Source: Paramoeba atlantica
Taxonomy: Eukaryota > Protista > Discosea
DNA length: 64,000 nucleotides
Assembly (NCBI GenBank): GCA_977017575.1
Contig: CDRNVI010000006.1
Coordinates: 124,001 to 188,000, forward strand
Direction of reading: 5' to 3'
The notes below the pieces were generated by a model. The model ran no database searches and had not been told where the DNA came from. It was given only the letters and a program-made list of their open reading frames with translations. Made by a program: the position numbers and the translations under genes. How positions within the stretch are numbered: the first letter of the stretch is position 1; each line of letters begins with the position of its first letter. Below, one piece after another: positions 8,452-49,403 of the stretch.

Positions 8452-8483
8452 CAACAAGGTACAGAAACTGTATCTTTATCGTT
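8452..8483 (-). other. Spliced-leader exon relic (32 nt)
   Basis: Minus strand AACGATAAAGATACAGTTTCTGTACCTTGTTG contains the conserved kinetoplastid SL core ACAGTTTCTGTAC and ends in TTG. Confidence 0.8.
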
Positions 8484-8570
8484 AAAGTTTTTTGTCTTTG
8501 TTTTTTTTCTTTTTTTCTTGTCTTTGTTTTTTTTCTTTTTTTTCTTGTCTTGTCTTGTTTTTTTTTTGTA
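8484..8570 (-). repeat. A-rich tail-like tract with CAAGAC/CAAAGAC units
   Basis: Plus strand is almost pure T with GTCTT/GTCTTT interruptions. Confidence 0.8.
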
Positions 8571-8587
8571 TTTGGTGATCCTGTCCC

Positions 8588-11197
8588 TTAGGGCTTTCTC
8601 TGAATATGACTGCCTACCTTACTAATGTCTCTCTCGATCTTACCTTCGTATCTCTCGACCTTCTCCATCTCAATCTCCTTCCCGCGACTGACAGCATCCG
8701 CCGGGTTCTCATCCGTGGATATGTACGCTGCCTTGACACAAATACCTTTCTCCTCAGTCAGTCGCAGGACTTCGCGCAATTCCATTGAAACCCCCTCTGA
8801 CTTGGAGATCCTCCTGTTCAGTGCAGCCTGACAGGAGGTGTTGTCAACAAAAACATCCAAGCAGGTTCCACGGGGGCAATGCGCGGAAAACTTCTCGAGG
8901 GCTAAGCGGACTGCTGCAGCTTCCGCACGATTCACCTCATACGAGGAGGACTCAGGCCACGCCTCTCCCGTAATCAAAACCTCTCCGCTGTCTAAATACA
9001 TAATCGCTCCCCACCCTTTCACCGAGGCATCGGTGTAGAGACGATGCTTGTGTGGAACAACATCGGGATGGGGAGGTGGAGACCGTGGAACATTCTCCAA
9101 CAACTCGTTTCTCCACTCTGCTAGCATGGAGCGAGTGACGACAGGGAGTGCGACCGGACGGTCACATAACTTTGGGCAACGGTTCAACAAGTTGATACGC
9201 CGTTGCGCCACCTTCAAAGCGAAATAAAATCGCGGCATATTGAGTCGGAGAACTGCGGAGCCATAAATGAGGCGCCCCACCACCGCCTCTAGGTCAACAA
9301 AGGAAATGTTGAAGAAAGAGTCGGCTCGCAGTTTCCTGATCACTCGCGGTCCCAGGCAGACCGTATGCGCGTTATGGTCGAACGCCACCCCATTGAACAC
9401 GTAATGTGCTACAGGGGGCTGACCCCGATCTTTGAAAAGACCGTTCGCCTTGTCGCAACGCTCGTCAATGAACTGAGCGTACGTGGTGGCCTCGGAGTGG
9501 GTTCCTGCAAACCGAACTCCGTCAACATAAACGTCGATAGCGCCTCGGTGAAACGAGTAGCGCTGAGAACAAATCGACGCCTCGCCAGCAATCGCGGCGG
9601 TAACCGTGTGCATAACCTCCGGTGCACACCTATGGCCCATCGGGAGGACGTTCATCTCATACACGTCTCCACTGTTCGTTCTAAGGCGGAATTTGGGCCG
9701 CGCCCTCTTCGGGATACCAATCTGGTAAAACCCGCATGTGAAGTCCCGCTTCACAGCCATCGGCTCGTGCGCCTTATGAAGATACTTGGAGGGATGATAT
9801 AATGGGACCTTTGGTTCATATGATTTTAATCTATCGTTATCGTCCCTTGTCCATGAAATAAATCTTCTGCGCTGATTGCCCTGATCATCGGTCTCCACAA
9901 CCGTGAAGGGAATCATGAACTGCATCGATGGGCGCTTTCTCAACTCCTGCGCCGGGACCTTAGAGATTATGCCTGCGTCCTCCAACAATCGGACGTCCGC
10001 CTCAGGCAATGAACCTTTCACACTAGGTTCGGGGTACGGGGCTTTAGGTACCCATAATAATTCATCCACTACCTTGCGAAAACGAGTGGCAGCTGACATA
10101 CTCATCCACTCCTTAACCTGATCCAAATGGATAACAGGTATCGACTTCTTAACGTGCAAAGGTAGGTGAGCGTCGTGTGCCTTGGCTAGCCGTGAAGAGC
10201 GGCGTGCACAAACAACGGAGTGCCTGCGAAGGTAAGGCACTTCCTCGAAGCACTTTGCCACGTGCTCCGAGGTTACAGCACTGGGAGACGTGCTGAGACT
10301 CTCTGCGTCCCGAGAGCCCTTGCCGTTGTAATACTGCTTGCGTTGTAGCGCAACAGTGATTCGACGTTGAGGTGTTTCGTGAGGTTCTGGACGTCCTCCA
10401 TCCTGAGATTCCCGAGGGAGATCTCGTGGAATAGGTAAGTAATTGCACCTCTTTTTATGGAATGTGTTCCGTACCCCGGACCGAGAAGTTGATTCATCCT
10501 GTGGTCCATCTCCCGGACCGTCGTGTAACACAGGCGCTGGCCTGGTCTCAAACTTCCCACAAACTGAGCCAGTTCGGGTGTCCCCGGTCCAGTCACTATC
10601 GCGTAGAGGTACGGCCGGTAAGGATTCAGACGGGTTGTCTTGGTCCCCCTGCCCCAATAAATGATTACCTCGTGACTGGCCACACTCACGAACTGCTCCC
10701 GCCTCAGGTCGGCGGTCTCGGTCCATCTCGCAGCGGCTTTCCAACACAGGAGGCAACACATGCTCTCCTTTACGTCGAGATGACGTCTCAGCTTCTTTAG
10801 AAGAAGTGGCGTGATTGGAAGCATCTGCCGCGTGGGTTCTAGCCCCTCCTGCGCTTGCAGGGCCTTTACGTAGAGACTCAATGGGGTACCTTCGATTCCC
10901 ATGAGCTCGAACAGAGTCCTCAATGCCCCTGCGTACCCCATGCGCGTCGAGGTAGCGAGAGGCAGAGTCTCGAGGAAGAGCACCGCGTTTGCAGGATTCG
11001 CGGTGATAAATAATTGTAATAAATAATTGTTGTTGTTGTTGTTGGTAACAAGAGCGCCTGCAATCCCCACATGCAAGCGCCGCAAGTACCACTCCGGCTC
11101 CCGAAATTGTTCCGGGTACGGGGACGCAAGGCTCTCCTAGGTCCTTCACCAATGACAGAGAACACTCCGTAGTTAGCCTACCATGTGTCAATCCCAC
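8588..11197 (-). CDS. YR retrotransposon family A (VIPER/TATE-like) RT/RNase H ORF, overlapping YR in another frame
   Basis: RT: KRDFTCGFYQIG, LPMGHRCAP, VYVDGV. RNase H: LYTDASVKGWG, NRAEAAAV, FVDNT, ENPADAVSRG. Confidence 0.88.
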   Translation of the reverse strand: MGLTHGRLTTECSLSLVKDLGEPCVPVPGTISGAGVVLAALACGDCRRSCYQQQQQQLFITIIYHRESCKRGALPRDSASRYLDAHGVRRGIEDSVRAHGNRRYPIESLRKGPASAGGARTHAADASNHATSSKEAETSSRRKGEHVLPPVLESRCEMDRDRRPEAGAVRECGQSRGNHLLGQGDQDNPSESLPAVPLRDSDWTGDTRTGSVCGKFETRPAPVLHDGPGDGPQDESTSRSGVRNTFHKKRCNYLPIPRDLPRESQDGGRPEPHETPQRRITVALQRKQYYNGKGSRDAESLSTSPSAVTSEHVAKCFEEVPYLRRHSVVCARRSSRLAKAHDAHLPLHVKKSIPVIHLDQVKEWMSMSAATRFRKVVDELLWVPKAPYPEPSVKGSLPEADVRLLEDAGIISKVPAQELRKRPSMQFMIPFTVVETDDQGNQRRRFISWTRDDNDRLKSYEPKVPLYHPSKYLHKAHEPMAVKRDFTCGFYQIGIPKRARPKFRLRTNSGDVYEMNVLPMGHRCAPEVMHTVTAAIAGEASICSQRYSFHRGAIDVYVDGVRFAGTHSEATTYAQFIDERCDKANGLFKDRGQPPVAHYVFNGVAFDHNAHTVCLGPRVIRKLRADSFFNISFVDLEAVVGRLIYGSAVLRLNMPRFYFALKVAQRRINLLNRCPKLCDRPVALPVVTRSMLAEWRNELLENVPRSPPPHPDVVPHKHRLYTDASVKGWGAIMYLDSGEVLITGEAWPESSSYEVNRAEAAAVRLALEKFSAHCPRGTCLDVFVDNTSCQAALNRRISKSEGVSMELREVLRLTEEKGICVKAAYISTDENPADAVSRGKEIEMEKVERYEGKIERDISKVGSHIQRKP
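10273..11085 (-). CDS. Tyrosine recombinase, family A, C-terminal part intact, N-terminus replaced
   Basis: AAARWTET (R), GRGTKT (K), HSIKRGA, LTKH...LLRY. Identity with the 17.3-18.4 kb copy begins only at ~11005. Confidence 0.85.
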   Translation of the reverse strand: MRRLHVGIAGALVTNNNNNNYLLQLFITANPANAVLFLETLPLATSTRMGYAGALRTLFELMGIEGTPLSLYVKALQAQEGLEPTRQMLPITPLLLKKLRRHLDVKESMCCLLCWKAAARWTETADLRREQFVSVASHEVIIYWGRGTKTTRLNPYRPYLYAIVTGPGTPELAQFVGSLRPGQRLCYTTVREMDHRMNQLLGPGYGTHSIKRGAITYLFHEISLGNLRMEDVQNLTKHLNVESLLRYNASSITTARALGTQRVSARLPVL

Positions 11198-11514
11198 TGG
11201 GAGGGTTCCTGATCAAGCACGAGTGCCGCTTTTACGCTTTAGAGTAGTGTAGCTTTTATGTTTCGGAGGTTCTTCAATTAATTATGCATGTGTAAGCAAG
11301 GAATTTACGTAGTGAGACGTCTATGTCAATGTGTGAATGTAGATATTGTGTGGTATATAGAGCATGTATTTGTGCACCCGCTCAGGAGAAAACAAAATTA
11401 TTAAAGGATATTTTGTACAGTATAATGACATGCAGGACCGTAAGTGAAAGTATGAAAATAGCTGATGTCGTATTCTATTTTACGTTTGTATGCTCAGCGG
11501 ATACCTAAATGTCT

Positions 11515-13248
11515 TCAGTCTCTTGATATGAATGTGAGGCCCTGTTCTGTGAAAAGTCTCCATGCTTTCTGCAAGCGTTTCCATGAATTGTACAATCTGA
11601 AGTTCAATTCATCACTAGAGAACATCCTTTTCGGACGAGTGCCTATGTCAGCTACATTTTCTTCTGTAGGTATATCACAAATGATGAGATTACCCGCAAA
11701 GCACTCATGCTGGCTGATGACCTCGTCCAAGGGATGCACACGAGAATACCCCTTGTCAAAAGCACGAGAAGCCGCGAGATTGTCGCTTGCGATCACCATA
11801 TTAGCGTATCCATGCTCGGTAGCCATGGTGATCGCTTGTGATATGGCTGTCGCTTCTGCAAGCGCAATCGGCAGGTCGCACGACTGCTCGAGTAGGCGGT
11901 CCTTACAGATATTTCCGTTTTCCATAGGCCACACCGCCCAGCGAGAGGTGGTTGCATCAACCGCAGTGTAGAAAACACGTTTCTTGTATGTCAATCTGGA
12001 AAACATGGCCCAGTCCCGGGGCTTATTATTCATAGAAAGAACGCGACACATTCCTGCCTGTATCAGAGACCGACATGGCTTATCAACCGGTACGCTCCAG
12101 TCGGAGATTTCGCCCAAGATACTTTGTTGCTTGGAAATTCGACCTAGATTTCTTGTCGCCACGCCCAGTATAGCGTAAGCATGGCGCAAGTAACCTGCGA
12201 ATTGATACAGTTTCCTTGCAGATACAATATCCATACGGCCCGCTGCAAGTGCCCAACTCTTTACAATAACTGGGTCTGGTATCCATTTTGCCCTTCCTTC
12301 GCTTTGTATGATTTTTATGCCGCAATATGTAAACGAGCAAGTTCTATTTTCCAAAGTCATGTATTTCGTGACAACGTTGAAAAGCTTGAAATTTCGCTCA
12401 AGGCGATAATACCAATCTCTTACTGTTTGTTTACAAGATACGACTAGAAATGAGTCGTATAATAGGGCAATGAATCCTCCCTGGGATAAACTTATTAGAC
12501 CTGGAGCTTCAGTGCATTCATATAAGGTTTTATCTACGTTCAAGTCGAGATCTCCCTCTTCTTCGTATAGCATTATTGCCCACATAATGCTTTGTGCAAT
12601 GCCGCATGCATGCTTGTAACCCATCGGTAATACCGCGGGTCGACATATCATAGGTCCATGCTTTATACAACAGGCATGTCCAAGACCAGATGAGATCGGT
12701 ATCTGGTAGTAGCAGTTGCGGATGTCCCCATGCAGAAAACAGAAACCATTCATTGCGCAATCCCCCAACCGAACTAGAGCGCGGACGAGTACTTGTGTGC
12801 TCGGCACGTGAAAGGGAACACCCTCCCCGACAACACGTTCATTGGTCCAGCGCAAGTCAAAAATTGCTCGCGAATACGTCCCATCCTTAAGTACTGCTAT
12901 GTACTTTCCAAACCCTCGGGCCATCTCCTTTGTAGTCGATATCAATACCCCACATTCTTGTAGGTAACGAATGTGCCTCCTATACTGGGAGGAGTCTGGC
13001 TCAGTCTTTTCAATGTATTGGGTGTCTGGCGGCAAGGGATCAGTGCCTATAAGGGAGATTGCCTGTCGCGAAAAGGGGAAACGGTCTAGGCCTGCGCTAT
13101 CTAACCGGATACCACCTACATTTTGTAGAGGGTAGAGAGTATCCGAGTCGTGTGCAAAGCTTCCGCGTCTGCGAAAATCGCTATCCTCCGGTGCGTAGTA
13201 CGCATCAAAAGGGGAGGACAGTTCAGAGCTTAGAAGTTCGGTATCCAT
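11515..13248 (-). CDS. YR retrotransposon family B RT/RNase H
   Basis: SRAIFDLR, HGDIRNCYYQIP, LPMGYKHA, LLYDSFL; RNase H AVDAT, LAEATAI, ASDNLAA, EENVADIGTR. Confidence 0.85.
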   Translation of the reverse strand: MDTELLSSELSSPFDAYYAPEDSDFRRRGSFAHDSDTLYPLQNVGGIRLDSAGLDRFPFSRQAISLIGTDPLPPDTQYIEKTEPDSSQYRRHIRYLQECGVLISTTKEMARGFGKYIAVLKDGTYSRAIFDLRWTNERVVGEGVPFHVPSTQVLVRALVRLGDCAMNGFCFLHGDIRNCYYQIPISSGLGHACCIKHGPMICRPAVLPMGYKHACGIAQSIMWAIMLYEEEGDLDLNVDKTLYECTEAPGLISLSQGGFIALLYDSFLVVSCKQTVRDWYYRLERNFKLFNVVTKYMTLENRTCSFTYCGIKIIQSEGRAKWIPDPVIVKSWALAAGRMDIVSARKLYQFAGYLRHAYAILGVATRNLGRISKQQSILGEISDWSVPVDKPCRSLIQAGMCRVLSMNNKPRDWAMFSRLTYKKRVFYTAVDATTSRWAVWPMENGNICKDRLLEQSCDLPIALAEATAISQAITMATEHGYANMVIASDNLAASRAFDKGYSRVHPLDEVISQHECFAGNLIICDIPTEENVADIGTRPKRMFSSDELNFRLYNSWKRLQKAWRLFTEQGLTFISRD

Positions 13249-13537
13249 TGTTTTGTGTGCGAAGTGCGTTTGAGATATAATTTATATCATATAATTTATT
13301 CTACTATGGGTGATCTATTTCCTACACAGCCACTATCTCCACATTTCTTAACTTTTATAGTTGGTCCACTTGTCACAGTTTATTGTGACTTTTACTTCAA
13401 TGACAGTGTGTAACTGTGTTCCCATATCTCTCGTCCTTCTCGATACGATTCTACTTATCACCTGTTTATCTAAAGTGTTCTAGTGATGCATACATTGTGT
13501 GCTTTACAATAATGGGACTGATTGTAAATTATTTATT

Positions 13538-14407
13538 TTATTCCATAGAATAACGTGTTGCAGTGAGTTCTGACATCCAGCGCCCTCTTCGAAGACGCGT
13601 GCTCAGATCAACTCCTTGCCGTGTCAAGTGTCCAGCGCAGCCGTGGCGCAGACAGTGGAACGACCATGTTTGCTGGCTGTTCCATCCAAATCGCGCGGCC
13701 GCGGCCGCTATCAAGCGATTGGCTTGCACCTTGTTCCAAGTCGGAAAGAGGCTTGATGTTGTTGAGATTGTTTTGAAGTACCCGAGTAAATGGCGTACTT
13801 CAGGTGCTTGTACCGTATCAACGGCAAAGTGGTGACGACCTTTCCCTCCACGAATTTTTATTAGTACATCGCTTTCGCTGATTTCCACGTCTGATGTCTG
13901 AAGACCTACGAGTTCGGAGTGTCGCAAAAGGCCAAAGTAACCAATTGCAAATCCTTGACCATACGTAATCTCTCCCTGGTCAATACAATATGTGGATAGT
14001 ACGCGAAGCTGGTCACGTGTGATGGAGCCCCGCGGCTTGGGGTCTAAACAAATTTTGAGCACCCCTTTAAATCGCCTTCGAAATCGAAGGGTTTGCGACC
14101 AACACTCGTTCTCTGGAAGGTCCTCAATTTGTCGCCAAACCAGGGCAGCGCGAAATGCTTCCAAGGTGGAGGGTCTGTAAAATCTCGACATGCTAGCACA
14201 TAAGGCAAGGAAATTCTCTTCTGCCATGTTGCATGCACCATGGACACCCATAAGGTGTTCCAGGCGATAAAAATATTGTGCTCGTTTTTGAGCCGTTCCC
14301 GCCGAAACGCCCACCTGAGCGAGCTGTCTATGAATTCCCACTTGAAGAAGAGAACGATACCCTCTCTGAATTTCTGCATCCCGCGAGGTTCGAGACTCTA
14401 GTGTCAT
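13538..14407 (-). CDS. Tyrosine recombinase, family B
   Basis: ATG at 14407 (MTLESR). GLLRHSEL, RGGK, HCLRHG, GRW...TRY: complete R-K-H-R-W-Y set. Confidence 0.88.
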   Translation of the reverse strand: MTLESRTSRDAEIQRGYRSLLQVGIHRQLAQVGVSAGTAQKRAQYFYRLEHLMGVHGACNMAEENFLALCASMSRFYRPSTLEAFRAALVWRQIEDLPENECWSQTLRFRRRFKGVLKICLDPKPRGSITRDQLRVLSTYCIDQGEITYGQGFAIGYFGLLRHSELVGLQTSDVEISESDVLIKIRGGKGRHHFAVDTVQAPEVRHLLGYFKTISTTSSLFPTWNKVQANRLIAAAAARFGWNSQQTWSFHCLRHGCAGHLTRQGVDLSTRLRRGRWMSELTATRYSME

Positions 14408-14757
14408 GTTGAGTGCTAGAAATGGCGGAACAATAATTACATTATACAGTATGTAGTATACGTATGATCTGGAGTTTTCATAAAGTAGACACGTACAACT
14501 GGCTACCGTGTGCAACGATTCTTAAATAGCTGAAGTATATAGGTACTTCGTAATAGAACACTTGTTTATAAATATTGTGTCGGCACACTTATCAGCACCC
14601 ATAATATATTTATCGGCATCCATTTTTAGTATCTTACTACTTTTTCGGGAGTTTTTATCAAATGTACGTGAAAAATACTTTTCTAGTGTTTGATACGAAC
14701 GCTTACTTTGCTTTCCACTCTTTCTTTCATACTTATTTTCATTTTGTGGTTCAATGT

Positions 14758-15822
14758 TTATTCATCGCGCCCGCGTTTGCCATGTCTAGGGAGAAATGGT
14801 TTTTCACGGTCGCGATGTTGACTAGCTTTGCAGTTCCGGGCCTGGTGCCCCCTTTTTCCGCAGTTCCAGCACGTTCCACCAGATGTACTGGAAACCGTTT
14901 GTCTAAAGCCATAACGGGGCTTTAAGTCCGGAGGAGCGCCGCGAGCGGATGCGCGTCCTTCAAGATTCAGACTCGGACGAGAGTGATGTACCTGCGACAC
15001 CGCACGTGAATGCGCGGCGAGATGCGCAACAATGGACTTGTTGCTCGTATCGACTGAATTGTCCCGCATGAGGGATTCCAGCGTTTCACGGGACACTGAG
15101 ACTCCCTCGTGCCGCAGTCGATACGACATTACGATCGCACCGAGCTTGCACAACAGCGTCCACACGCTCAGACGAACCCCGTCGTCTTTCGCGTTCGCGA
15201 AGGGGACACCTGGTGGAATTTCGGTCAGTGCCTTGGCGTAGTATGCCCAGTCCAAACGTCCTGCGGCAACGTCACAAACTTGGCGTTTGACATTCGGAGT
15301 AATCCAGGGCTCCGTGCAGAAGCCGGTCTGGGTAAGGCACGTGTGGATCGCCTCCCCGCACCGGGGGTCTTCTTGGGTCCCGATAATGGATCGAAAAGCC
15401 TCGCGGAGGTCTTTAGACGGGTGCTTCGTATTTGCTTCGGGGTGATGCGTCTGAGAGTTCACCGTAGGTTTTTCGAGAAGAGACGCCTCTTCTGCACCAA
15501 GCTCATCACGAAGCGCAACAAGGACTTGCGCGGGCACTTCGCTGCTTGCAAATGTACCATTTTGTACTGCAGCCAACGCGAGACGAATGCTCCGCGAGCC
15601 TGGTACACTGCTGCCTCTTCCCGCGTGCGCGCACGCACGTTCTAGGAGAGGATCGATTGGCATGCGCTCTTTCGCGAATTGGATTGCCCCGGGAATAACG
15701 GTGAGTAAATCCTGACGAACAGTCAGTCCCAGGCGTTTCATTGAGCATATTTGCTTAAATGCCTCCTCAGCCGAAACAGTGGGTGCTGCAACAGGCACCA
15801 ATTCGGGGATAGCATCAGACAT
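14758..15822 (-). CDS. Gag-like protein with CCHC zinc knuckle, family B
   Basis: ATG at 15822 (MSDAIP); CWNCGKRGHQARNC; lies upstream of YR and RT. Confidence 0.8.
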   Translation of the reverse strand: MSDAIPELVPVAAPTVSAEEAFKQICSMKRLGLTVRQDLLTVIPGAIQFAKERMPIDPLLERACAHAGRGSSVPGSRSIRLALAAVQNGTFASSEVPAQVLVALRDELGAEEASLLEKPTVNSQTHHPEANTKHPSKDLREAFRSIIGTQEDPRCGEAIHTCLTQTGFCTEPWITPNVKRQVCDVAAGRLDWAYYAKALTEIPPGVPFANAKDDGVRLSVWTLLCKLGAIVMSYRLRHEGVSVSRETLESLMRDNSVDTSNKSIVAHLAAHSRAVSQVHHSRPSLNLEGRASARGAPPDLKPRYGFRQTVSSTSGGTCWNCGKRGHQARNCKASQHRDREKPFLPRHGKRGRDE

Positions 15823-16157
15823 TGTAGTATTTTGAAAAACGAACAAAGACGTAAAACATGCGTTTTTACACTGCTTACGGAGTGAGAAACTCACAGCCGA
15901 TTACACATTACCTAAAGATTAATCCAACCGTAACAATATCTACATCAAGACGGGGCTATCCTTCAAATCAAGCAGCCGTGTAAGCCTAAATTAAACGATA
16001 ACTTGCATCCCGTGCCGATTCTTGCAAACTAGATATTTTTGAGTCACATCACGACTCATATTACCAAAGGTTGGAGTTATTAACTCGTCACAAGGTAACC
16101 TGACGCGCCGCTTCGTACGGCATTTTCAAACGTACCACAAGCTTAAAAACTGCGCTT

Positions 16158-16942
16158 GTAACATACAGAGCGCTTGGCGCACGATCACGGCGCTATATTC
16201 CTTGCGTTTAACGTAATTACCGAGCCAATGGGCTCATGTAGTGCTCGGCATGGCAACTACATCACAAACTTAAAAGCTACGCTCGTAACATACAGAGCGC
16301 TTGGCGCACGATCACGGCGCTATATTCCTTACGTTCAACGTAATTACCGAGCCAATGGGCTCATGTAGTGCTCGGCATGGCAACTACATCACAAACTTAA
16401 AAGCTACGCTCGTAACACACAGAGCGCTTGGCGCATGATCACAGCGCTATGTTACTTACGTTCAACGTAATTACCGAGCCAATGGGCTCATGTAGTGCTC
16501 GGCATGGCAACTACATCACAAACTTAAAAGCTACGCTCGTAACATACAGAGCGCTTGGCGCACGATCACGGCGCTATGTTCCTTACGTTCAACGTAATTA
16601 CCGAGCCAATGGGCTCATGTAGTACTCGGCATGGCAACTACATCACAAACTTAAAAGCTACGCTCGTAACATACAGAGCGCTTGGCGCACGATCACGGCG
16701 CTATATTCCTTACGTTCAACGTAATTACCGAGCCAATGGGCTCATGTAGTGCTCGGCATGGCAACTACATCACAAACTTAAAAGCTACGCTCGTAACACA
16801 CAGAGCGCTTGGCGCACGATCACGGCGCTATATTCCTTACGTTCAACGTAATTACCGAGCCAATGGGCTCATGTAGTGCTCGGCATGGCAACTACATCAC
16901 AAACTTAAAAGCTACGCTCGTAACACACAGAGCGCTTGGCGC
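16158..16942. repeat. 127-bp tandem array, six full units plus a partial
   Basis: Unit starts at 16158, 16285, 16412, 16539, 16666, 16793, 16920; only a few substitutions between units; no spacers. Confidence 0.97.
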
Positions 16943-21788: not shown

Positions 21789-23032
21789 GGTTAAATTAAA
21801 GCAAAATTCGCCTTTTTTTAAAAAAAGTTTTTTTTTGCGGTTTTCAAAAATTTTGTGCAATGAAATCAACACTTTCCGCTTCTAGTTTTCTACTTAAATA
21901 CTTGGACAAGACTTATAAATGAATACAATGACAATGATCTTGTAGATTCTGTAGGATGCGCAGCATTACATCGCCGCCATTGTACCGTAGGCTGCCGTTG
22001 CATTTTTCAGCATTGGCTTGCACACGATCTGCCCGTTTATCCTTTTTCCTTCCTAATACGTTTCCTTCTCGATTAAGTCTCTTCTTCGCCACCGAATTCG
22101 CGCACTCCACAGTGTTCTTGTGGACACCCTCTTCTGTTATCCATTCTCGGCGGTGGTTCACGCTATTCCACTTATAGCGTCCACCAAGGCGGATATTGTG
22201 ACGCGCCCCGTCGGTCTAAATTCGTGTCCTCCCCCCGCTCGCCAGATCTTCAATTCGAGGAAGTAACGTGCTCGCCTTACGATCAGGTACAACTTCCATG
22301 AACATTTCAGATAATTTGTTCGCTCGAGTAGTCACAGCAATTGTCTGTGCAACTTCTGTACCATCATCTCGCACCCGTCTTGCACCATGAGAACCTCGGT
22401 GACGTTTCCGTACAGAAAAATATGTCTCATCGCATTGCATTGAACCAACGCTGCCGCGATTCCTGATACGTCGGCGAACATGAGCTGTGGCCATCATGCC
22501 ATCCATCCATTGCCTTAGAGACACAATGGTCTGCTGACTAAGTTCTGTCTCCGCTGCCGAATCCGCATGTCGTCCACCACGAGCGTACAAAATTATGTAC
22601 TTTAATGTTTGCTTTGCACTTCTTTGTGCCCTTCCAGGTACGAGAGGTCCTAAGGTGGCGTACATTCCTTTGCATTTTTTAGTACACCTCCATTTCCCGT
22701 CAGTGACGTGCATAGTATAGGGCGCCTTGTGTAGTCTTTTATAACATACAACCTTCTGAGCCACCAACTTATGGGTTCTTAACCACTCCCTGCATTTCGA
22801 TTCGCTCCACACAGAAACTTTGCTCAAAGTGAGATTTCCTCGGCAAGCGAAACCGTTGCATCCTTTACAGGGCATGTGTTGGAGTTGAGGAGTCTGAATC
22901 TAAAAAATGAATCTGAAAAATAAAGGAAAAAGTGGAAATACGTGATACGATACAAAAAAAGATACAATTATTTTTAGTGGGGACGACTTTCCTTTTTTTT
23001 TCAAAAAAGGCGAATTTTGCTTTAATTTCACC
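21789..23032 (-). mobile_element. Merlin (IS1595/ISXO2-like) DNA transposon
   Basis: ~29-bp TIRs GGT(T/G)AAATTAAAGCAAAATTCGCCTTTTTT; 8-bp TSD CGAAAATC at 21781-21788 and 23033-23040. Confidence 0.93.
21913..22875 (-). pseudogene. Merlin transposase with one in-frame TAG
   Basis: QCDETYF, RI*TDG, GVHKNTVE; track ORFs 22216-22875 and 21913-22161 are in the same frame. Confidence 0.85.
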
Positions 23033-24789: not shown

Positions 24790-24975
24790 CTGCGTAAGGC
24801 GTGCTATATATCGACGAAGCTAGGATACGGCCGAAGCCTTCAGGCCCTCCTAGCCATGCAGGACATGAACGTGACTCCTCTGAAGCTCTGCGCGAAAGCC
24901 CTGAAGGGTCAAGGAGCGGGCGAACCGGTTCGGCAAATGGAGCCGCTCACGCCACGCCTGCTACACCGCCTGTGT
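24790..24975 (+). pseudogene. Diverged fragment of a family A-like tyrosine recombinase
   Basis: STKLGYGRSLQALLAMQDMNVTPLKLCAKALKGQGAGEPVRQMEPLTPRLL aligns by eye with STRMGYAGALRTLFELMGIEGTPLSLYVKALQAQEGLEPTRQMLPITPLLL. Confidence 0.75.
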
Positions 24976-27166: not shown

Positions 27167-27169
27167 TAA

Positions 27170-27505
27170 ACCATTGAAGTTGAGACTCGAGACTCCCGAA
27201 CTATGCCAGCAAGCCGTTCGATTTCTCCTTCGGGAGACGTGGAGCGTTCGGAATGAACCAGGGATAGCACCCAGTTCGCCGAATAGCGAGGGCATACAAC
27301 TCTCCACGTGTCCGGGGGAGGCGACACTAGGACCTGCGGAACACTCGTACGTAATCGTATGATTACAATGCGAAGTCCTTGCCCGAAAGGGTTAGGATTG
27401 TTCAGCGGCCGAGGTGGGCGAAAACCCACCTTTGAGTGGCGACCTCCCCCCAAGCTACCTCGGCTTACTCCGGGGAGGCAACACCCCTTTACGGGATAAA
27501 AAGGC
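27170..27505 (+). ncRNA. Candidate structured RNA domain (copy A)
   Basis: Many short complementary blocks, UUCG and GNRA loops; second copy on the minus strand at ~37555-37890. Confidence 0.55.
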
Positions 27506-27642: not shown

Positions 27643-27654
27643 CAACAAGGTACA
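27643..27654 (-). other. SL 3'-end relic ahead of a 31-codon ORF
   Basis: TGTACCTTGTTG|AATT..., 32-nt leader, then MVKTRAQISELNQESS...* (27515-27610). Confidence 0.55.
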
Positions 27655-32737: not shown

Positions 32738-35620
32738 ATGCCATGTCGCGCGTTTCTGGACCGACTTGCGAGACATCATTATAGACTTTTGCGTACTCAA
32801 GTTTCTCGACCACGAGAGAGCTATGAATTTCGGCGCCTGGTTCGGTATTGCAGAATGAACCCAAAACTGCGGCAGTATCGAGTACGCGATGATCTTGCAA
32901 ATATGAATCCAGGGGTTATAGGAATGTCAACTGCGATGCAGGTTGCTTATATGAGAGTATACCGCACTCACGACAAAAGCGATATACGAAGGGCACTTGT
33001 GGATTTGGTTCCCATTCTCATATATAGAGCTGAGGATGACCGACGGCATCTTTTCAACGACCTGAACGCAGAGGAAATGCTGCCGTCTAATCAACCCGGA
33101 ACTTTAAACGAGATAAAGCGAAAAATGTGGACGCGACGAGAATCCTTGGATGATCTCAACAAGAACATGCTAATCGTTGATGAAAAAGCACAGGCCCAGC
33201 TAAGACGCGAGATTAAGATGAAGCTCAAGAAATTTCACAAAAAAATTGCACTTTTTAATGCAATAGAAAATAGAACGGCATTGTACGATAGCATGGACAG
33301 TGTTGCTTTTTTTCTATACAGAGCGCCAGCTATGTACGCCGCAACATATCGCGTATTCCATGAACTTTCAAAACTTATGCCTCTGTTCGTTCCGAAATCC
33401 GTCCTTGACTTTGGTGCTGGTACAGGAACAACATTGCTCGCTATCAAGGAAGTGTATGATCCGGAATCCATGGTTCGCACGAGCCCCACCATGCGTCACT
33501 TAAAGAGAACGTTCTTTCACAATGTCTCTCATCGCAAATATACCTTTGGACTTCTCAATGATGAAACCAGCGAAGTAGCCAATACGAATACTCGACGCAG
33601 ACGATCGCGCTTCATGACTGTTTTGGGAATGCTGCGCCGAGGTGAGATAGATATGAAATTCATTCCATTAGACTTGCAACGCGAACTAATCCGGGTTGGG
33701 GCCAATGCAATAGAGAGAGTAAAAAACAGATTAGGTTTGACTCGCTCTTTAGAAAGAGGGGAAAAGCAATACAACATAAAGGGAATTTGGACACAAGAAT
33801 CGGATGAGAAGGTAGATCAACTTCAATATTTTGTCTCCACGTTGCATGAAGATTCTGCAAAAGCGGACGTTATCGCAGAGGATGATGCGAAGAACAAAAC
33901 CACTAAAACGTCCGATGAGATTGATGAAGAGTCAAAGACTTGGTGGGAAAAGCTTGTGGAAGTCCAGCATAAAATGAATCAGCGTGATTCCAAACTTCGC
34001 CCCATGCAGCACATCATTGCAATTGAACCTAGCCAAGGAATGATGGAAACAGCGATGGTAAACTTAGCGGAAGAATTACCACTTGTGCATTGGAGGAGAT
34101 ACCTTGCAGCCGACGATGCAGATGGGCGTGAAGACCTAGTAGTAGCAGCGTACACGTTCAGCGAAATCCCAACGTCATCAGCACGCAAGTCTGCACTGGA
34201 AAAATTGTGGAAGCGAACAGGTAAAGTTCTTGTGATCATTGACCATGCAAGCATAGCGTGTTTCGCAATAATGATGGAGCTTCGAGAAGCGCTTCGTGAT
34301 ATGGCAGGAATTGGTGTATGGAACGAGCAGCCAACCATTATAGCGCCATGCCCACACGAAAGACGTTGCCCAATGCAACATTGCTGCGTTGGCACGAAGG
34401 ACAAGACAATGCGAGTATGCCATGCGACGGTGGGATTTGATTTGACATTTGTGGAAAAATGGGTCCGACGTACGCGCTGCTCTCGGGCAAAGGAAAAATT
34501 TTGCTACTTAGTTGTTGCTCGGAATGAAGTTGCCCCCACACGTAAAGAAAGAGCCGAAAAAAAGAATGCGCGCACTAAACAAGAGGACGATGCAGCGCAA
34601 AGATCACGTCAAGTGGAGCTGGCTCGTGAGTTGGAAAAAACAAATCATTACGAGAAGAATTTGGAAGCCGCATCCTCCGAAGGAGGTGCTGACGATAATA
34701 TCAAGGACGACGAACATCCTAACTCGCCAACGAAACTGCTAGTTCCCTGCCACAAGTACAACAGGCTGAGCAATACTTCTCACGTACAAAACGCAACAAG
34801 AATAATAGGAAAGAATGAACTTTACGTAGTACGCAGTGAGATTGATGAGTACTCTACCCATTTTCTCAAGGAACTTCACGGATATTCTCGAATTGTGAAA
34901 GAGCCTGTTCATCGTGGTCATATGTGGGCGACCTTTTGTACTAAAGAAGGAGAGCTCGTCCGGGGAAAAGTGTATCGCCGTTGTTACGCTCGAGATAGTA
35001 AATTATATCCACGTTCACACTTACCACCAACAAAAAAATGGCAAATCATGGGGGGTTGGAAGCTTTTGAAATCATCTGTATGTGGAGGGTTATTTCCGCC
35101 AGAACTTCCCCTCTTTTCTAAAAGAGTGTACGAGCAAATGGAAACACCGAACACATTTATCGACGATGCGAATAATACTCACTTGGAAAAGACATCTATG
35201 GTTTTAGGAACGCCACGAGAACACCGTTTCACCTCTGAGACCCCCACAAAGGACGGAGTTTCATTTGAAGACGAGGTATCTGGGAATGTATCTCCAAAAT
35301 TTCGCGCGCATGAGATAAAGGACGAATTGTTGCATAGCTTCAGCGCTGGGCATGATGTCTCTGTTGTCAAATCAAAAGGTGGGCTCTCAAACATCCATAA
35401 GAACTCTCATACTTATAAGTGTGCTCAGGTACAAGGGCAAGCAAAACCGGACTCGATGCAATCTCCTGAAGTGAGAGGCCGAAAAGTTAGTACAGAGGAA
35501 TGGTCACGTGTCGTGCGCGGGACAAGCAGAGCTCTGGCAAAAAAGATGAAGTTACGCAAAATTATTCCCATGAGAGACCGGAATTTAAGAGATAAACAGA
35601 AGCCGAAATACGTGCCATAA
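32738..35620 (+). CDS. RSM22: Mitochondrial small-subunit assembly methyltransferase (RSM22/METTL17 family)
   Basis: VLDFGAGTGT, DLVVAAYTFSEI, IIAPCPHERRCPM, EKFCYLV, RIVKEPVHRGH; 960 aa, similar in size to long trypanosomatid orthologues. Confidence 0.85.
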   Translation: MPCRAFLDRLARHHYRLLRTQVSRPRESYEFRRLVRYCRMNPKLRQYRVRDDLANMNPGVIGMSTAMQVAYMRVYRTHDKSDIRRALVDLVPILIYRAEDDRRHLFNDLNAEEMLPSNQPGTLNEIKRKMWTRRESLDDLNKNMLIVDEKAQAQLRREIKMKLKKFHKKIALFNAIENRTALYDSMDSVAFFLYRAPAMYAATYRVFHELSKLMPLFVPKSVLDFGAGTGTTLLAIKEVYDPESMVRTSPTMRHLKRTFFHNVSHRKYTFGLLNDETSEVANTNTRRRRSRFMTVLGMLRRGEIDMKFIPLDLQRELIRVGANAIERVKNRLGLTRSLERGEKQYNIKGIWTQESDEKVDQLQYFVSTLHEDSAKADVIAEDDAKNKTTKTSDEIDEESKTWWEKLVEVQHKMNQRDSKLRPMQHIIAIEPSQGMMETAMVNLAEELPLVHWRRYLAADDADGREDLVVAAYTFSEIPTSSARKSALEKLWKRTGKVLVIIDHASIACFAIMMELREALRDMAGIGVWNEQPTIIAPCPHERRCPMQHCCVGTKDKTMRVCHATVGFDLTFVEKWVRRTRCSRAKEKFCYLVVARNEVAPTRKERAEKKNARTKQEDDAAQRSRQVELARELEKTNHYEKNLEAASSEGGADDNIKDDEHPNSPTKLLVPCHKYNRLSNTSHVQNATRIIGKNELYVVRSEIDEYSTHFLKELHGYSRIVKEPVHRGHMWATFCTKEGELVRGKVYRRCYARDSKLYPRSHLPPTKKWQIMGGWKLLKSSVCGGLFPPELPLFSKRVYEQMETPNTFIDDANNTHLEKTSMVLGTPREHRFTSETPTKDGVSFEDEVSGNVSPKFRAHEIKDELLHSFSAGHDVSVVKSKGGLSNIHKNSHTYKCAQVQGQAKPDSMQSPEVRGRKVSTEEWSRVVRGTSRALAKKMKLRKIIPMRDRNLRDKQKPKYVP

Positions 35621-36801: not shown

Positions 36802-38918
36802 GTCAACAAAAGTCGTGTTAATGCGAAAAAGGTTGTGAGGAACAAAAGTACGTTACGAAAGTATGTTAAAAAATAGATTTTGTTCTTTTTTTTAAAAAAT
36901 GGATGCATATTTGTTCACCCCGCTTGAAGCGAAGGTCTTGCGCGACCTAAATGTCATAGAGACCCCAAAGCAGGAACCTTCTTCCCTAGAGGAAAAGGTC
37001 ATGATCACACAAATGGCGAAAAGCTTGGGTCCGAGCAAAGCTTCTCGCGAATGGGAGAGGGTTCATGGTACGTTTCACTCAGTTTCCTTTTTATCAAAAT
37101 ACTTATCTCACTAGATAGCAATGGTTTGGTGATGCTTCCGATTGAAGTCCCACGTCAGAACATAAAGAAAGCGACGAAAAAAAGTAAGAAAATATCTCAC
37201 CCAGAAATTGAAAACCTGAAAAAAAATTCTAGAAATGCAACACTCTTAAAACGGTCACCTTTGATAGTCCGAGCGGCTAAAGAGCGCGAGTTCCGCTACA
37301 AAATGTCACTCGATTGATTGGTAATTGTCTTTTGTAAATTATAATATATTTTTCGGAATCTTTTGTAAATGGGTCCGTGCTCTAATAAATATTTTACTGC
37401 GTTTGAAGTTTACAATTTTCTTTGTGAAATGAGTGACTAAATGAAACTTTTCTTCAATGGGCGTGTTTTTTTAAGGAACAGTAAGAATTGGCAAAGCTTG
37501 GGAAAAAAGTGAACATGGTAGATGGTAAATCAAGATGGTAGATGGTTTATAAGGCTTTTTATCCCGTAAAGGGGTGTTGCCTCCCCGGAGTAAGCCGAGG
37601 TAGCTTGGGGGAAGGTCGCCACTCAAAGGTGGGTTTTAACCCACCTTGGCCGCTGAACAATCCTAACCCTTTCGGGCTAGGACTTCACATTGTAATCATA
37701 CGATTACGTACGAGTGTTCCGCAGGTCCTAGTGTCGCCTCCCCCGGGCACGTGGAGAGCTATGCCCTCGCTATTCGGCGAATCGGGTGCTATCCCTGATT
37801 CATTCCGAACGCCCCACGTCTCCCGAAGGAGAAATTAGCTCGAAAACGGCTTGCTGGCATAGTTCGGGAGTCTCGAGTCTCAGCTTCAACGATTTAGACT
37901 CCTCAGCTTCAACGGACCAAGTCATCCAGGGTGTTATACCCTTGAGCGGACTGGCTCCTCAGCTTCAAAGGGCTAAACCTCGGCTTCAACGAGCTCGTAT
38001 CTCTCCGAATTAACACTGTAGCCCCGTTATCATGGGCTAGTTGCAAGCCGCACAAAGGAAGAAGAAAAAACGACTCCAAAGTTTGGCGTGAATGGCGCAC
38101 ACCCTAGTTTTTTTGTACCTTTTTATATTCGGTACCGGGCGGCGCCATTCTTCGGCGAAGGGGGTGTAGGGGGACAGCGAGTGGGGCGGCGAAGGGGGAC
38201 GGCGAAAGGGGCGGCGAAGGGGGACGAAGAGGACGCCGGATGCAAAGGCGGTGCAGGGCGCAGGGGGGCGCGGACAGGATGGCCAGGCAGGGGGCGAAGG
38301 GATGAGGAAGATTGCGCAGGAGGGGAGCCAGGAGGGCGGCGCTGGTGGTGAGCGAGGCGGCGTAGGATGCGCAGATCAGTGAGCGGGGAGGGGGGGCGAA
38401 AGGGGGGGGGCGACGAAGTTAGAGCAGGAGGGGGGGGAGAGGCAGCGGCGGGGAGCGTGGGGAGAAGCGCGGCATTGAGGGGCGGCGAAGAGGGCAGCAA
38501 AGAAGGACAAACGTGTAGCGGAAGCGAATGAAGGGGGCGGCGAAGAGGGGATAAATCGGGGGGGACGATACGGGCCGGCGAAGGGGGCGAGGAGGGGGGG
38601 ATGAAGGGGTGACGAAAGGGGGTGAGGGGGACGGCGAAGGGGGCGGCGCTGTGGGATGAAGGGCGCTGGGGTGCTAAACAAGGTGGTGATGGGGGGGGAA
38701 TGGGGCGAAGAGGGCAGCGGACACACCAGGCGGTATTCTTCCTTTGCTGGATGGGGTGAAGGGGCCATGGGGGACTGAGAAGTTAAATATATTATTGAAT
38801 TCAACAAGGTACGCTGGGTGAGTTAGATCGGGAAGCTGGGATCGCTAAGTCCCATCATCCGGCCTAAGTGTCAAAATTAATCGTGTTAATCCCAGAAATT
38901 AACACGACTTTTGCTGAC
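36802..38918. mobile_element. Putative TIR-element relic bracketing copy B
   Basis: 21-bp inverted repeat (36802-36822 / 38898-38918, one mismatch); HTH-like fragment MAKSLGPSKASREW in 36899-37317. Confidence 0.4.
37500..38812 (-). mobile_element. C-rich/structured-tail retroposon family, copy B, SL-headed
   Basis: GTACCTTGTTG|AATT at 38802-38812, ATG 33 nt later, Pro-rich frames, conserved 3' region, ATAAAAA then ACCATCT repeats. Confidence 0.8.
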
Positions 38919-43665: not shown

Positions 43666-44594
43666 AACCCCTCTGTACCAATAAGGCACCCACCCTTAAC
43701 TTTTCAGACAAATCTCCGTTTGGGCTGATTTTTGTTGCATTTTGCAGATCTCAACATAAAGACTTTGCGCGTGAAAAAATGAAACAAAAAGAAACAAATA
43801 TGTATATTTTAGAGAAAGATTACCATTTTGTCACCTTTTCTCCGTTACTCGCCACACAAGCTTTGAGGCGAGCATCTAAGCTCAAAACCCAATCATAAAT
43901 ATAATCTTGAGACAGTTTACGCCAAGCTTTACGTACGCTTTTTATGAGATCTTCTTTATTTGCCGGATTGTATTCATCTACAAGACTTTGTACCATGCTC
44001 CACACGTTTTCTATTGGTGAGAGATCGGGGGAGTTGGGCGGCCAATTTTTCAAAAATTTCATTTTGTTGTCATCAAGGTACGCTTTTGTTTCCTTCGCAG
44101 TGTGAGGTGTTGCCCCATCTTGCTGAAAAATATAGTTTGGGGTGAATGGTACTTTTTTTAATGTTTTAATGTACGAAACACATGTAATTCAGTTGGATGG
44201 AAGAATAACAAAGTGTCTTTGGATTCTTTTTTTACTTCAGGGCTCAGAGTGTAAAGAATTTCAGGCGAATTGTTTTTCAAATATTTTCCAATATGTTTCA
44301 CATTGACATTAAACCCGCGGGCTAGTTACCTTATCGCAACCCCGTGGCCAAGCCTCATGCGCCATAACACTTTTCCACTTTCTGTAAGACCACCCCTGGG
44401 GAGTCAATACGTATTTTTTGGCATGAAAAGTGATTTTTTTAAAAAAATACATTCAACTTTTTTATATTTTTCGAAATGACCTAATGACAACGGGAACGTA
44501 CAGATCTCAAAATTTTGCACGATAAAGTGGATAACCCCCCTAGCCCCCCTCGTGCGAAAAATAAGGGTGGGTGCCTTTTTGATGCGGAGGGGTT
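43666..44594 (-). mobile_element. Internally deleted Tc1/IS630 element related to 21577-24171
   Basis: TIRs AACCCCTC...AAGGCACCCACCC, TA flanks, WPPNSPDLSPIENVW, shared TTTTGCAGATCTCA motif. Confidence 0.9.
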
Positions 44595-46330: not shown

Positions 46331-46711
46331 AAAATATCCCCTTTTTTGTTTTTGTACGTATCGACTCCAGAGGGGTAGTCTTACAGAAAGCGGAAAGGTG
46401 TTATTGCGCATGAGGTATGGTCAGGGGGTTGCGAAGAAGCAACTAGTTCGCGAGTTTAATGTTAATGTTAAATATATTAATTAGAAAATATTTGAAAAAT
46501 AATTCGACTGATAAAAAAAACTGTACTCTAAGCCTTGAAGCAAAAAAACGAATCAAAAACCGGAAAAATCTCGTTACAAGCTTTATTGAGCCTTTAGACC
46601 TAGCAGGGGTTCCTATAAATGGATCTACTCGCAAGATTCGCGGAAAAATGTAAAGAAAGGGTATACACGTGTCTTCTAAAACTATTAATAGAGATATACT
46701 TACCCTCGGCT

Positions 46712-49080
46712 ACGGTTCGTATTTTCGGTGGGGAGAGATAGAAAAACCAGTCTACATTTGTATATTATAAATTTATGTGTTATTTTTATGTGGAATTTCC
46801 GATTCGATGTACTCTTCTAGCTATATTTTCCCAGGGTTCGCGGAAACTTTAAAACTTTAAATAAAGTACTTTATAGTAACTTTATTTTTTTAAAAAAAAA
46901 GCTTTATTTTACTTTATTTTTCCCCTCATTTTTTAAGGAGGCTGACGGCTCTTTAGCACATTTACTTTTTGAACATCCAATGTACAGTGCGGGGCTTTAT
47001 TACGTTACGGGTTAATTAAGGGTAGCTGTTCTGACGCTCTTTTTATCGCACTCGAGAGCCTATCCCACATTACATGAACCATTGCATCTCTCGGTCTTTT
47101 GCTGCTCCCTTGCATTGAGCTCGCAATGTTGTTAATAAACATATCCCTTATATTTTCATTGCGAAGAGATCCCCAAAAAGGTTTATTCGAATTAGATTCA
47201 TAAAAGCAATTTTCAATGCTTCCTGGATGAGTGTATTTTTACGGCCTGGCACGCATTTCGGGGATGACCCGCGACATATCTCCGCATTTCTGACGAAAAC
47301 AAAGCACGCAGCACGAGCAGAAAAAGAGTTTAATAGCTCAAGCGCTGCGGTCTCTCTCTCGTCGGAAATCAAGCATCGATGCGCTGAGAATTTACACTTC
47401 TGAGACCCGATCAGAAAAGGGAGTTCGGCGATCAAAGGACACAAATATGAAATTTCCCGATGCTTCAACACTAGTGCGAAACTTGCCCGAGACGCAGAAC
47501 CATACATCGCATTTGACTGTCTGTCACATTCGCGTCCTCCATTGAGGCTTCCCCCCAACTTCCCCACTCTTCTGGTCAGCTTCTTCGACGGGACGAGCCG
47601 CGCGATCGCGCCAGGGGGCATGAAATATGTCAGAATAACAAAAGGTTGACGAGGGCGTTCTCCCGGACCCCTTTAGATAAAAAGATAGATAGATTTTTCC
47701 AGCAAGGTAGAGCCGACGATGAAGAATCGGATCCCCACTTTTTAACGACAAACGCGTCTCCTGTAGAGCCATTACGGATACACCATAACTCCCCATGGAG
47801 TTTTGTAGACTCCTTCTACAGTCCAGAGTGTTGCCCCGCCAGATTTTTTGCCACGCCACCCGTCAGTAAAGTCCACTGTTCCACTAGGCAGCCGTATTCT
47901 GTCGCTTTTATTGAAAAATGAAAAATAAAGTTTTTTAAAGTTTTATAGTAATTTATTTCTAATGTATTTCTGAACGAGTACGAGTGGTGGTGTGGTCCCG
48001 GAAGTGAGATGTTTCCCTCTGTTTGCGAAGCGGCTACGCACTACGTATGGACGCCTCCCTTAGTTAACAGATGTGATTCGTGGCTGTCTATAATCGGGTA
48101 CATGTACAGTTCCAGACAGGCTTCCCTGGCTCCTGATGTCGTTTCTCACCAGATCTTCGTACGTGGAAATTGCGACTAATTGGGTTATATTCTTCCGGAC
48201 GAAGGTGTTTCTCAGGATGGTAGCGATGTTGAAGTATCTGATGTCGAAGAAGATGAATTTGTTATGCAGTAATGATTAATGCATAATATTTTATTGTTAA
48301 TATTAATGCTATGCATAGTATCACAGTATCATACACTGCCGTATAAATGTTTTCTATGTGGTGATTCTTTATAGTTTCACCTTAGTTTGCTAGGACTCGA
48401 GGGTAAACTCGACTGGCCAAAAAAAATAAAAAAAAAATGGTACCATTGCGGTGTTAGGGGGTAGGCTTCCGGTGGGCCTAGGGGGTTCACACCAAAAAAA
48501 AAATAAAAAAAATAGATGGGCGACACAAGCAAATCAGTAGAGGGAATTCTTCTTATGGAAGGAATTCCTCATCGCTAAAGATACCGTTTCTATACATAGA
48601 GCATTCTGTGCCAATCCTACGAATCAGCACACTTGAGAGGAAATCATTTTGTATTTAATGGCTAGTGCGCCGATGCGGGTCTGTGTGGGTCGGTGCGGGT
48701 AACTGGGTCACAGACCCGGGTAATTTACACAGACCCGCTAATGGGTAATTACCCATCGACCCGGCAGGGGTATGAGTAAAATAAAGTCAATAAAGTACTA
48801 TATAGTAACTTTATTCGCAAAAAGAAAACTTTATTTTACTTATTAAAATTTCTGCGAACCCTGTATTTTCCTTTGTTTCTTTCTCTGGATCATTTTCATC
48901 CTTTTTACTAACAACAGTGCGTTTTTCCTTTCCAGTTAAATGTTCTCCTAAATTATATGTCTATTGAGAGCAATGACGCATTGCAAGAGCGATTGACTGC
49001 TCTTGAGCCTGAGACAAGTGCCGAAGACAAACACTTTGATGTCATCAAAGACCGCACCGAATCCCCACCCGCAACCCCTC
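46712..49080 (+). mobile_element. Harbinger-like derivative carrying a CRE fragment, interrupted by hAT
   Basis: 46712-46831 plus 48864-49050 duplicates ~19957-20245; ends ACCCGCAACCCCTC (49067-49080), one mismatch to the 45978-45991 TIR. Confidence 0.7.
46832..48863. mobile_element. hAT-like non-autonomous element
   Basis: TIR CAGGGTTCGC(G/A)GAAA; 8-bp TSD TATTTTCC at 46824-46831 and 48864-48871; empty site visible near 20060. Confidence 0.9.
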
Positions 49081-49403
49081 AATTATTAACTGCCACTATG
49101 TGGGTGCCCTGCTTGTCTCAAATCTCGGCAACCAGATTCCCCAGATGGGGAAGGAACGCCGCGTGGCCCCGTAGAAGGGTCCTGCAGCGCATGGGGACTC
49201 GGAACCGTGTTCCGAGCGGGGCGGTCGGAAATGAAGAAAGGGAGGCGCACCCCTACTTTACGACAAGAGGGACAGTTCCTCTCCTAGCGCCATCCGGAAA
49301 CGGGCATTAAAACAGTAAAAGTATGCCCGTTTCCGGGAGAGAAAAGATGAGATAGGAAACAACAAGGTACAACAAGGTACAGAAACTGTATCTTTGTCAT
49401 AGC
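49081..49403 (-). mobile_element. SL-headed hairpin element, copy 2
   Basis: 34-nt relic GCTATGACAAAGATACAGTTTCTGTACCTTGTTG (49370-49403), its last 10 nt repeated in tandem, pyrimidine tract, 14-bp hairpin ~49293-49336. Confidence 0.75.

Follow-up and report, generated by a model that had tools for sequence, protein, structure and literature searches.

The window analysed here is a 64,000-nt stretch of contig CDRNVI010000006.1 (positions 124,001 to 188,000, forward strand) from assembly GCA_977017575.1, which is filed under Paramoeba atlantica; the host of the elements described below is a free-living relative of trypanosomes, that is, a kinetoplastid. The first 31 kb of the window form a mobile-element island that contains a tyrosine-recombinase retroelement together with Tc1/IS630-like and IS1595-like transposases. 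The host genes, which the initial annotation had placed on the plus strand throughout, are indeed all on that strand, namely RSM22/mt-SAF1 (32738-35620) and, between 52 and 62 kb, RPS3a, an ATP-grasp protein, an FtsH-type protease, an eIF2B subunit and RPL13a. Distributed over the window are short relics of the spliced leader (SL) exon that stand at the 5' ends of different elements (Table 1), and the origin of these relics is the subject of this study.

The exact 11-mer GTACCTTGTTG occurs seven times in the window. When up to one mismatch was allowed, nine matches were found versus 0.79 expected, a number reached by none of 100 shuffles of the window; the one-mismatch matches at 25517 and 44071 are probably chance, and that at 44071 lies within a Tc1/mariner-type transposase reading frame. 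The initial annotation had reported five relics, all on the minus strand, and its observation as a whole was partly confirmed. All five are real, with the corrections that the relic at 8452 is 36 nt and not 32 nt long and that the perfect match starting at 49370 ends at 49395. Three of them are followed by AATT, with an ATG 48, 32 and 33 nt further on, as described. The restriction to the minus strand did not hold, given the plus-strand relic at 2054-2064 and a further, degenerate plus-strand candidate at 24970-24983, which lies at the head of the plus-strand copy of a proline-rich element. None of the window relics has the promoter block, the full exon from A1 or the GTATGAG intron of a true SL gene, and the earlier statement that no GT intron follows the relics therefore stands.

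Table 1. Spliced leader relics, the elements that they head and associated features of the window (positions in the 64,000-nt window).
Feature	Position	Strand	Description
SL relic	8452-8487	minus	36 nt, SL bases 3-38; preceded by an A-run; 5' end of LINE-A
SL relic	26488-26503	minus	16 nt, SL bases 23-38; heads class 2 element
SL relic	27643-27654	minus	12 nt; heads fragment of a non-autonomous element
SL relic	38802-38812	minus	11 nt; heads element with proline-rich ORF
SL relic	49370-49395	minus	26 nt, SL bases 13-38; heads class-2-like element
Second, stacked partial relic TACCTTGTTG	49360-49369	minus	10 nt; directly after the 49370-49395 relic
SL relic	2054-2064	plus	heads 340-aa ORF
Doubtful degenerate SL relic	24970-24983	plus	4 of 14 bases mismatched; by itself not significant
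LINE-A, full-length intact R2-like LINE	3863-8487	minus	SL head, leader, ORF, 3' UTR, poly(A)
A-rich degenerate tail of upstream retroelement fragment	8488-8567	minus	target tract of the LINE-A insertion
Class 2 non-coding hitch-hiker, about 535 bp	25969-26503	minus	16-nt SL relic at head
Class-2-like element head	49249-49395	minus	SL bases 13-38, stacked 10-nt relic, first hairpin of the family
Non-autonomous fragment	27515-27654	minus	12-nt SL relic, AATT leader, start of 31-aa ORF
Non-autonomous element	37530-38812	minus	11-nt SL relic, AATT leader, 130-aa proline-rich ORF, structured tail
SL-headed ORF	2054-3111	plus	relic 2054-2064, 24-nt leader, 340-aa ORF 2089-3111
SL-less 52-nt leader module	1819-1872	minus	module 1870-1819, AG at 1872-1871
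Tyrosine-recombinase (VIPER/DIRS-like) retroelement	8591-15894	minus	recombinase 13541-14515; A-rich tail 8488-8567
LINE, long interspersed nuclear element; ORF, open reading frame; UTR, untranslated region.

The true SL was defined from its genes. The genome-wide scan for SL 3'-end k-mers that the initial annotation had proposed found the SL 20-mer 877 times in the assembly of 45.7 Mb, 445 times on the forward and 432 times on the reverse strand, whereas the reversed 20-mer, used as a control, did not occur in the assembly. About 40 of these sites are true SL RNA genes, which consist of a conserved upstream block (promoter), a 38-nt exon starting with AACTTTAACG and ending with CCTTGTTG, and an intron starting with GTATGAGAAGC. 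Tandem arrays of about 2.56 kb on contigs C97 and C107, as well as other arrays, contain these genes, and the other strand of the repeat unit encodes a 5S rRNA. The window relics match the 3' end of this exon exactly, so that the caveat of the initial annotation that the organism's real SL might differ from the relics no longer applies. Intron-like sequences were also found outside SL genes. At G000 C25:199067-199101 (minus strand), an orphan SL intron has no exon before it but GAGAAGC, A11 and TT; an insertion at the boundary of exon and intron may have left this as its 3' junction, or it may result from an internal duplication. At G000 C14:299177 and C23:26099, the SL intron start GTATGAGAAGCTTCG follows a different sequence (..CAGTGGGATCTAGGACT), which could be a chimeric or variant SL-like gene.

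The relic at 8452-8487 heads LINE-A, which carries a 48-nt leader beginning with AATT, an ORF (8403-4414) and a 23-nt poly(A) (3885-3863). The ORF encodes 1329 aa, with zinc fingers at the N-terminus and a reverse transcriptase for which R2 structures were matched. A CCHC knuckle with RHN and PD..D motifs is the restriction-like endonuclease signature of R2-type elements, and all three motifs were read directly in the LINE-A C-terminus, for which a sequence search against solved structures gave no match. Copies 99-100% identical were present on three other contigs, indicating that the element is young. A search from the ORF start, blind to the SL, revealed an SL head on every full-length copy, including those of subfamilies about 83% and about 79% identical. 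Moreover, 27 of 28 copies had a perfect SL, while the adjoining leader diverged, and the 12 bases upstream of the AATT leader equalled the SL end in all 51 copies compared, from four subfamilies; in 50 of these 51 the head lies in unrelated or A-rich DNA. Two tandem arrays with a period of about 2.28 kb (G000 C21:1-11700 and C22:139400-155700) consist of an internally deleted LINE-A, whose unit comprises the 3' end, A9, gacctc, the SL and the first 284+ nt of the query.

A second LINE, LINE-B, showed that the relic belongs to the insert. Its reverse transcriptase is 28% identical to that of LINE-A and it has the same endonuclease motifs, while its ORFs gave no match in searches against solved structures. 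LINE-B has inserted within another LINE (L078:1894-7661), the empty, uninterrupted site of which is present in locus L017. Not only the poly(A) and a tail repeat of 18 nt but also an SL head of 20 nt lie between the two copies of the 7-bp target-site duplication (CCAAGGA), indicating that the head is part of the inserted cDNA. Thus, a relic inside a retroposed insert with poly(A) and a target-site duplication was found in LINE-B, and LINE-A likewise ends in poly(A). These structures also bear on the possibility that the elements are SL-targeting, as CRE, SLACS and CZAR are, and that the adjacent SL is target sequence and not insert. LINE-A and LINE-B do share the restriction-like endonuclease architecture of the site-specific R2/CRE group, and a single LINE-A copy lies in an SL gene context. 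Nevertheless, SL targeting is extremely unlikely: the duplication encloses the head, the DNA upstream of heads is unrelated or poly(A) with SL bases 1-2 and the promoter only on contig C41, no SL intron was found after the elements, and the one SL-gene-linked copy is joined at the exon end and not within the exon at bases 11/12.

SL heads are not confined to LINEs. Class 2 elements measure about 0.55 kb, are rich in hairpins at both ends and lack poly(A), and their copies have common 5' and 3' ends; none of their ORFs exceeds 12 aa, and at least 160 copies, in several subfamilies, share an SL-GTAC junction. No RNA family matched class 2, no Rfam family matched the window, and no autonomous LINE partner was found among the loci examined. 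Derivation of class 2 from the SL RNA intron was rejected, because the similarity ends at GTA. An internally deleted antisense class-2 element was observed in every SL/5S unit at L085 (G000 C97:2600-5600), about 390 bp downstream of the SL gene and ending at a (GA)n tract. Of the remaining carriers in the window, the proline-rich element has a tail 93% identical to 27165-27507 on the opposite strand, and the fragment headed at 27654 adjoins the 3' end of the plus-strand copy there. The ORF at 2089-3111 is 52% identical to the SL-headed ORF family of locus L026, whose ORF gave no match in searches against solved structures, and its relic adjoins a 5'-truncated antisense LINE-A 3' UTR.

The relics therefore head at least four different element families and are not the fixed terminal motif of one transposon, an alternative that the initial annotation itself had raised. 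Its description of SL-headed LINE and SINE-like (short interspersed) families dispersed outside the SL arrays agrees with LINE-A and class 2, among others. Heads were compared in a sample of about 48 distinct heads, mostly from the first contigs, and several of the pattern-search counts given here refer to the first 100 places listed. All identifiable carriers in the sample are retroelements or non-coding hitch-hikers, and the SL-to-ATG leaders measure 22-63 nt in the sampled ORF-bearing copies.

The positions at which heads begin were informative about the template. Among 48 distinct heads, 23 start at SL base C3, and nine more are ambiguous owing to an A-rich or poly(A) flank. The base before C3 is T in 15 heads, C in six and G in none, which is consistent with one untemplated purine added to the cDNA. 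The SL RNA itself has been retroposed as well: retro-pseudogenes of the unspliced RNA at L079, L082 and L083/L084 (G000 C6:27090, C83:133019, C87:74382 and 106940) comprise the exon, about 67 nt of intron and a short A-tail, followed by 18-nt tandem tail repeats, and in two of three loci they start at exon base 3. The tail repeat unit at L079 matches the LINE-B tail, which suggests that this pseudogene was mobilised in trans. From these ends we infer that the templates started with a genuine capped SL and that reverse transcription as a rule does not extend into the first two bases, which are modified. In addition, the upstream flank of heads is very often the 3' end of another LINE with its poly(A), indicating insertion into A-tracts in the same orientation as the resident copy; the succession of LINE 3' end, poly(A) and SL seen at LINE-A recurs at many other loci.

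Repeated addition of the leader was evident from stacked relics, of which 68 were found genome-wide, triple stacks being also present. Sixteen-nt stacks (SL+16; 11 exact and five near) start right after the internal ACAG of the SL. The commonest stack, SL+10, was found in 35 cases from many families, including the window relic at 49360-49395. Descent of SL+10 from one inherited event was rejected, because at least 25 different leaders follow it. Furthermore, two leaderless look-alikes carry AG exactly at the junction. The first lies in the 5.09-kb tandem repeat of L001-L004 (G000 C1:9752-25030), in which SL bases 3-38 stand between two copies of a 34-nt leader, so that the 34 nt after the SL recur just upstream, with AG before the upstream copy; this arrangement fits a terminally redundant retroelement copied from trans-spliced RNA. 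The second is the SL-less module at 1870-1819 of the window, preceded by AG at 1872-1871, since the identical 52 nt directly follow the SL at locus L029. Judged by their sequences, the AG-bearing look-alikes and the stacks after an internal AG point to real trans-splicing.

Heads also show partial 5' duplications and one snap-back inversion, which fit template switching at the RNA end. Switching might even be the source of the leader, if the reverse transcriptase, on reaching the 5' end of an element RNA, changed to SL RNA or free exon and the SL was never part of the element RNA. The U6-L1 chimeric pseudogenes of mammals form by such template switching, and R2-type reverse transcriptases are known to jump templates. 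The partial SL duplications, the snap-back, variable small inserts at junctions and the retroposition of SL RNA would agree with this origin, and the SL+10 stack could possibly be produced by realignment of the cDNA on a repeated TG. We regard it as very unlikely, since the element-side junctions are constant, 22-63 nt before the ATG in the sampled ORF-bearing copies, and are not random truncations, and the 16-nt stacks start exactly after AG. Moreover, jumps target RNA 3' ends, and the abundant SL RNA ends in its intron, yet no chimeras of SL plus intron with an element were seen.

Taken together, the SL copy at their 5' ends shows that the elements were copied back from leader-carrying RNA, and the motifs are copies of the host SL exon at the 5' ends of retroelement insertions. 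According to the mechanism that we propose and regard as likely, element RNAs would carry a genuine SL at their 5' end and would be reverse-transcribed on the chromosome by target priming, for the most part at A-rich sites, among them the poly(A) tails of older elements. Synthesis of the cDNA would usually extend to SL base 3, at which modified bases near the cap probably halt the enzyme, and shorter relics, such as four in the window, would be 5'-truncated copies. The source of the SL would be the host and not inheritance alone. In several families, the SL would be added by ordinary trans-splicing at an AG, with re-splicing possible inside an element's own relic, whereas in the main LINE family the leader-bearing RNA may stem from a small number of source copies with an SL-promoter fusion, like that on C41, or arise by another route.

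Several observations weigh against this mechanism. No SL-headed retrocopy of an ordinary host gene was found in the sample of about 48 heads. Probable RNA contigs cover RPS3a and its neighbours and leave the element region uncovered, and no SL junctions were found in them. The SL+10 stack starts at a point with no AG before it. Class-2 heads begin near SL bases 10-14 and not at base 3, and the SL part of class 2 may be inherited and not renewed. For LINE-A, no copy with AG before the AATT leader was found, and none trans-spliced at an internal AG was present in the first 100 of 160 SL-GTAC junctions; LINE-A mRNAs spliced at an internal gcAG followed by GTACGCGG were accordingly rejected as the templates (0 in those 100). 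Ordinary trans-splicing of dispersed copies therefore does not explain the invariance of the SL-AATT junction. The only configuration in the assembly able to yield SL-AATT RNA afresh is on C41 (L078). There, a LINE-A with 99.5% identity to a dispersed copy is joined to the end of a complete SL exon (from A1), which is itself preceded by 963 bp of genuine SL-gene upstream DNA. This is the sole promoter-fused copy, it is interrupted by the later LINE-B insertion, and no SL intron was found downstream of it on that contig, so that it may be a source copy or a recombination by-product.

Some of these points would suit an SL that is an inherited terminal motif, captured once per lineage and kept by selection, for instance within an internal promoter or for translation, instead of being renewed from the host. 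The SL-AATT junction is invariant in all 51 LINE-A copies, the starts of class-2 heads at bases 10-14 are typical of the family, and one class-2 copy found without the SL pattern carries a mutated relic. On balance, purely inherited heads appear quite unlikely. Between LINE-A subfamilies that are 17-25% apart nearby, no differences were found in the 36-nt SL, where about 6-9 are expected neutrally. Heads stop at C3, like the pseudogenes of real SL RNA, and the progressive shift of ends that transcription from inside copies would cause was not seen. Furthermore, the stacked relics and AG-bearing paralogues show repeated SL addition.

Renewal of the leader from the host may proceed in LINE-A in a way of its own. 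SLACS RNA starts at the SL promoter, and the RNA of the C41 copy could, by analogy, start there too. A tentative explanation is that endonuclease-type LINEs adopted the SL exon as their own 5' end and regain it without trans-splicing at an AG, likeliest through recurrent fusion of cDNA with the SL promoter by way of the shared 36-38 nt. The initial annotation had named both trans-splicing and co-transcription with SL genes as routes, and each has found evidence here, in the AG acceptors with the stacked relics and in the C41 fusion, respectively.

The initial annotation had further proposed that sense SL-headed insertions are purged from polycistrons, so that survivors lie antisense to host genes. 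The relics at 38802 and 49360-49395 are in fact on the minus strand between plus-strand host genes. However, purging was not supported and seems unlikely: a plus-strand relic is present at 2054, the window relics (five or six minus versus one or two plus) are too few, at six or seven, for significance, and the genome-wide strand count is even (445 versus 432). Most relics, moreover, lie in the mobile-element island and not between genes. Neighbouring heads are on the same strand in 56 of 89 pairs (p about 0.01), a mild clustering that is expected because insertion into resident poly(A) tails, tail to head, fixes the orientation. As a whole, the interpretation given by the initial annotation was partly supported; the reverse transcription of SL-bearing RNAs and their dispersal outside the SL arrays are supported, and the relics equal the SL exon and occur in at least four families.

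Other features of the window include a 127-bp tandem array at 16136-16942 (6.4 copies, 97% identical) beside the tyrosine-recombinase ORFs, and remains of DNA transposons on the minus strand at 22219-23556 and about 44000-44200 with IS630/Tc1-mariner-like and IS1595-like transposase ORFs.

The most similar system known is that of dinoflagellates, in which DNA-encoded relics of the dinoflagellate spliced leader (DinoSL) lie at the 5' end of retroposed gene copies, and stacked, truncated relics that start after an AG within the SL record repeated trans-splicing and retroposition (PMC6050394, PMC5585692). In both systems the relic is the host SL exon up to its 3' end, in retroposed copies, and stacks after an internal AG are shared (SL+16 here), but the commonest stack here, SL+10, does not follow an AG. 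The dinoflagellate carriers are ordinary host genes, whereas those in our sample are retroelements or hitch-hikers. Among kinetoplastid elements, CRE, SLACS and CZAR are SL-associated LINEs with a reverse transcriptase and a restriction-like endonuclease (PMC12278014). CRE1/CRE2, SLACS and CZAR share with LINE-A the layout of a reverse transcriptase followed by a C-terminal CCHC and restriction-like endonuclease, but they insert at one fixed position of the SL exon in SL genes, whereas the elements described here are dispersed over A-rich targets with the exon end inside the insert. The best 120 relatives of LINE-A comprised proteins from metagenomes, proteins of the same species and sponge elements, at about 40% identity, without any trypanosomatid CRE; the sponge elements were the nearest named relatives. 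Metagenome contigs with relatives at 39-40% identity carry no SL head, and the closer metagenome matches are the same species.

L1Tc/ingi elements also solve the 5' problem of kinetoplastid LINEs with a short conserved 5' module, Pr77, an internal promoter and ribozyme, which binds SL-promoter factors (PMC8190864) and yields unspliced, SL-less transcripts (PMC1874656); here, in contrast, the 5' module is the SL itself. In the Drosophila telomeric LINE HeT-A, which is described as promoting in tandem, the 3' end of an upstream copy could drive the next copy. Head-to-tail tandems of LINE 3' end, poly(A) and SL-headed LINE are frequent here, a likeness in sequence arrangement, although the poly(A) spacer varies in length. 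The U6-L1 chimeras of mammals similarly join small nuclear RNA sequence 5' of retroposed copies, and SL RNA retro-pseudogenes occur here, but U6-L1 junctions fall at random points of L1 or mRNA, whereas those described here are fixed at the start of a short leader. A metagenome pattern scan for the SL returned mostly metatranscriptome mRNAs. Two metagenome contigs, L119 and L126 (Ga0169931_10214598 and Ga0169931_10134239), contain internal SL-like 20-mers with the 3' variants ..TACTCAATTG and ..TACTTTATTG, followed by AATT and no intron, and may be SL relics in other kinetoplastids or chimeric transcripts. No report of SL-headed retroelements in kinetoplastids was found in the literature searched.

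Non-LTR (long terminal repeat) retrotransposons lose their upstream promoter at each copying, and every lineage needs a workaround. Several lineages here begin with the leader that the host places on all its mRNAs, and the SL head gives the element RNA the 5' end required for translation in kinetoplastids. If the fusion explanation for LINE-A is true, source copies would be transcribed as ready-made, SL-capped "mRNAs" of which all dispersed copies are the offspring, a new 5'-end strategy for non-LTR retrotransposons that would be linked to the SL-gene-targeting CRE elements. The relics also label rounds of retroposition from within, as they do in dinoflagellates, although here the labelled sequences are mobile elements of a kinetoplastid, and the start of heads at base 3 may reflect which cap-proximal modifications the organism's SL bears.

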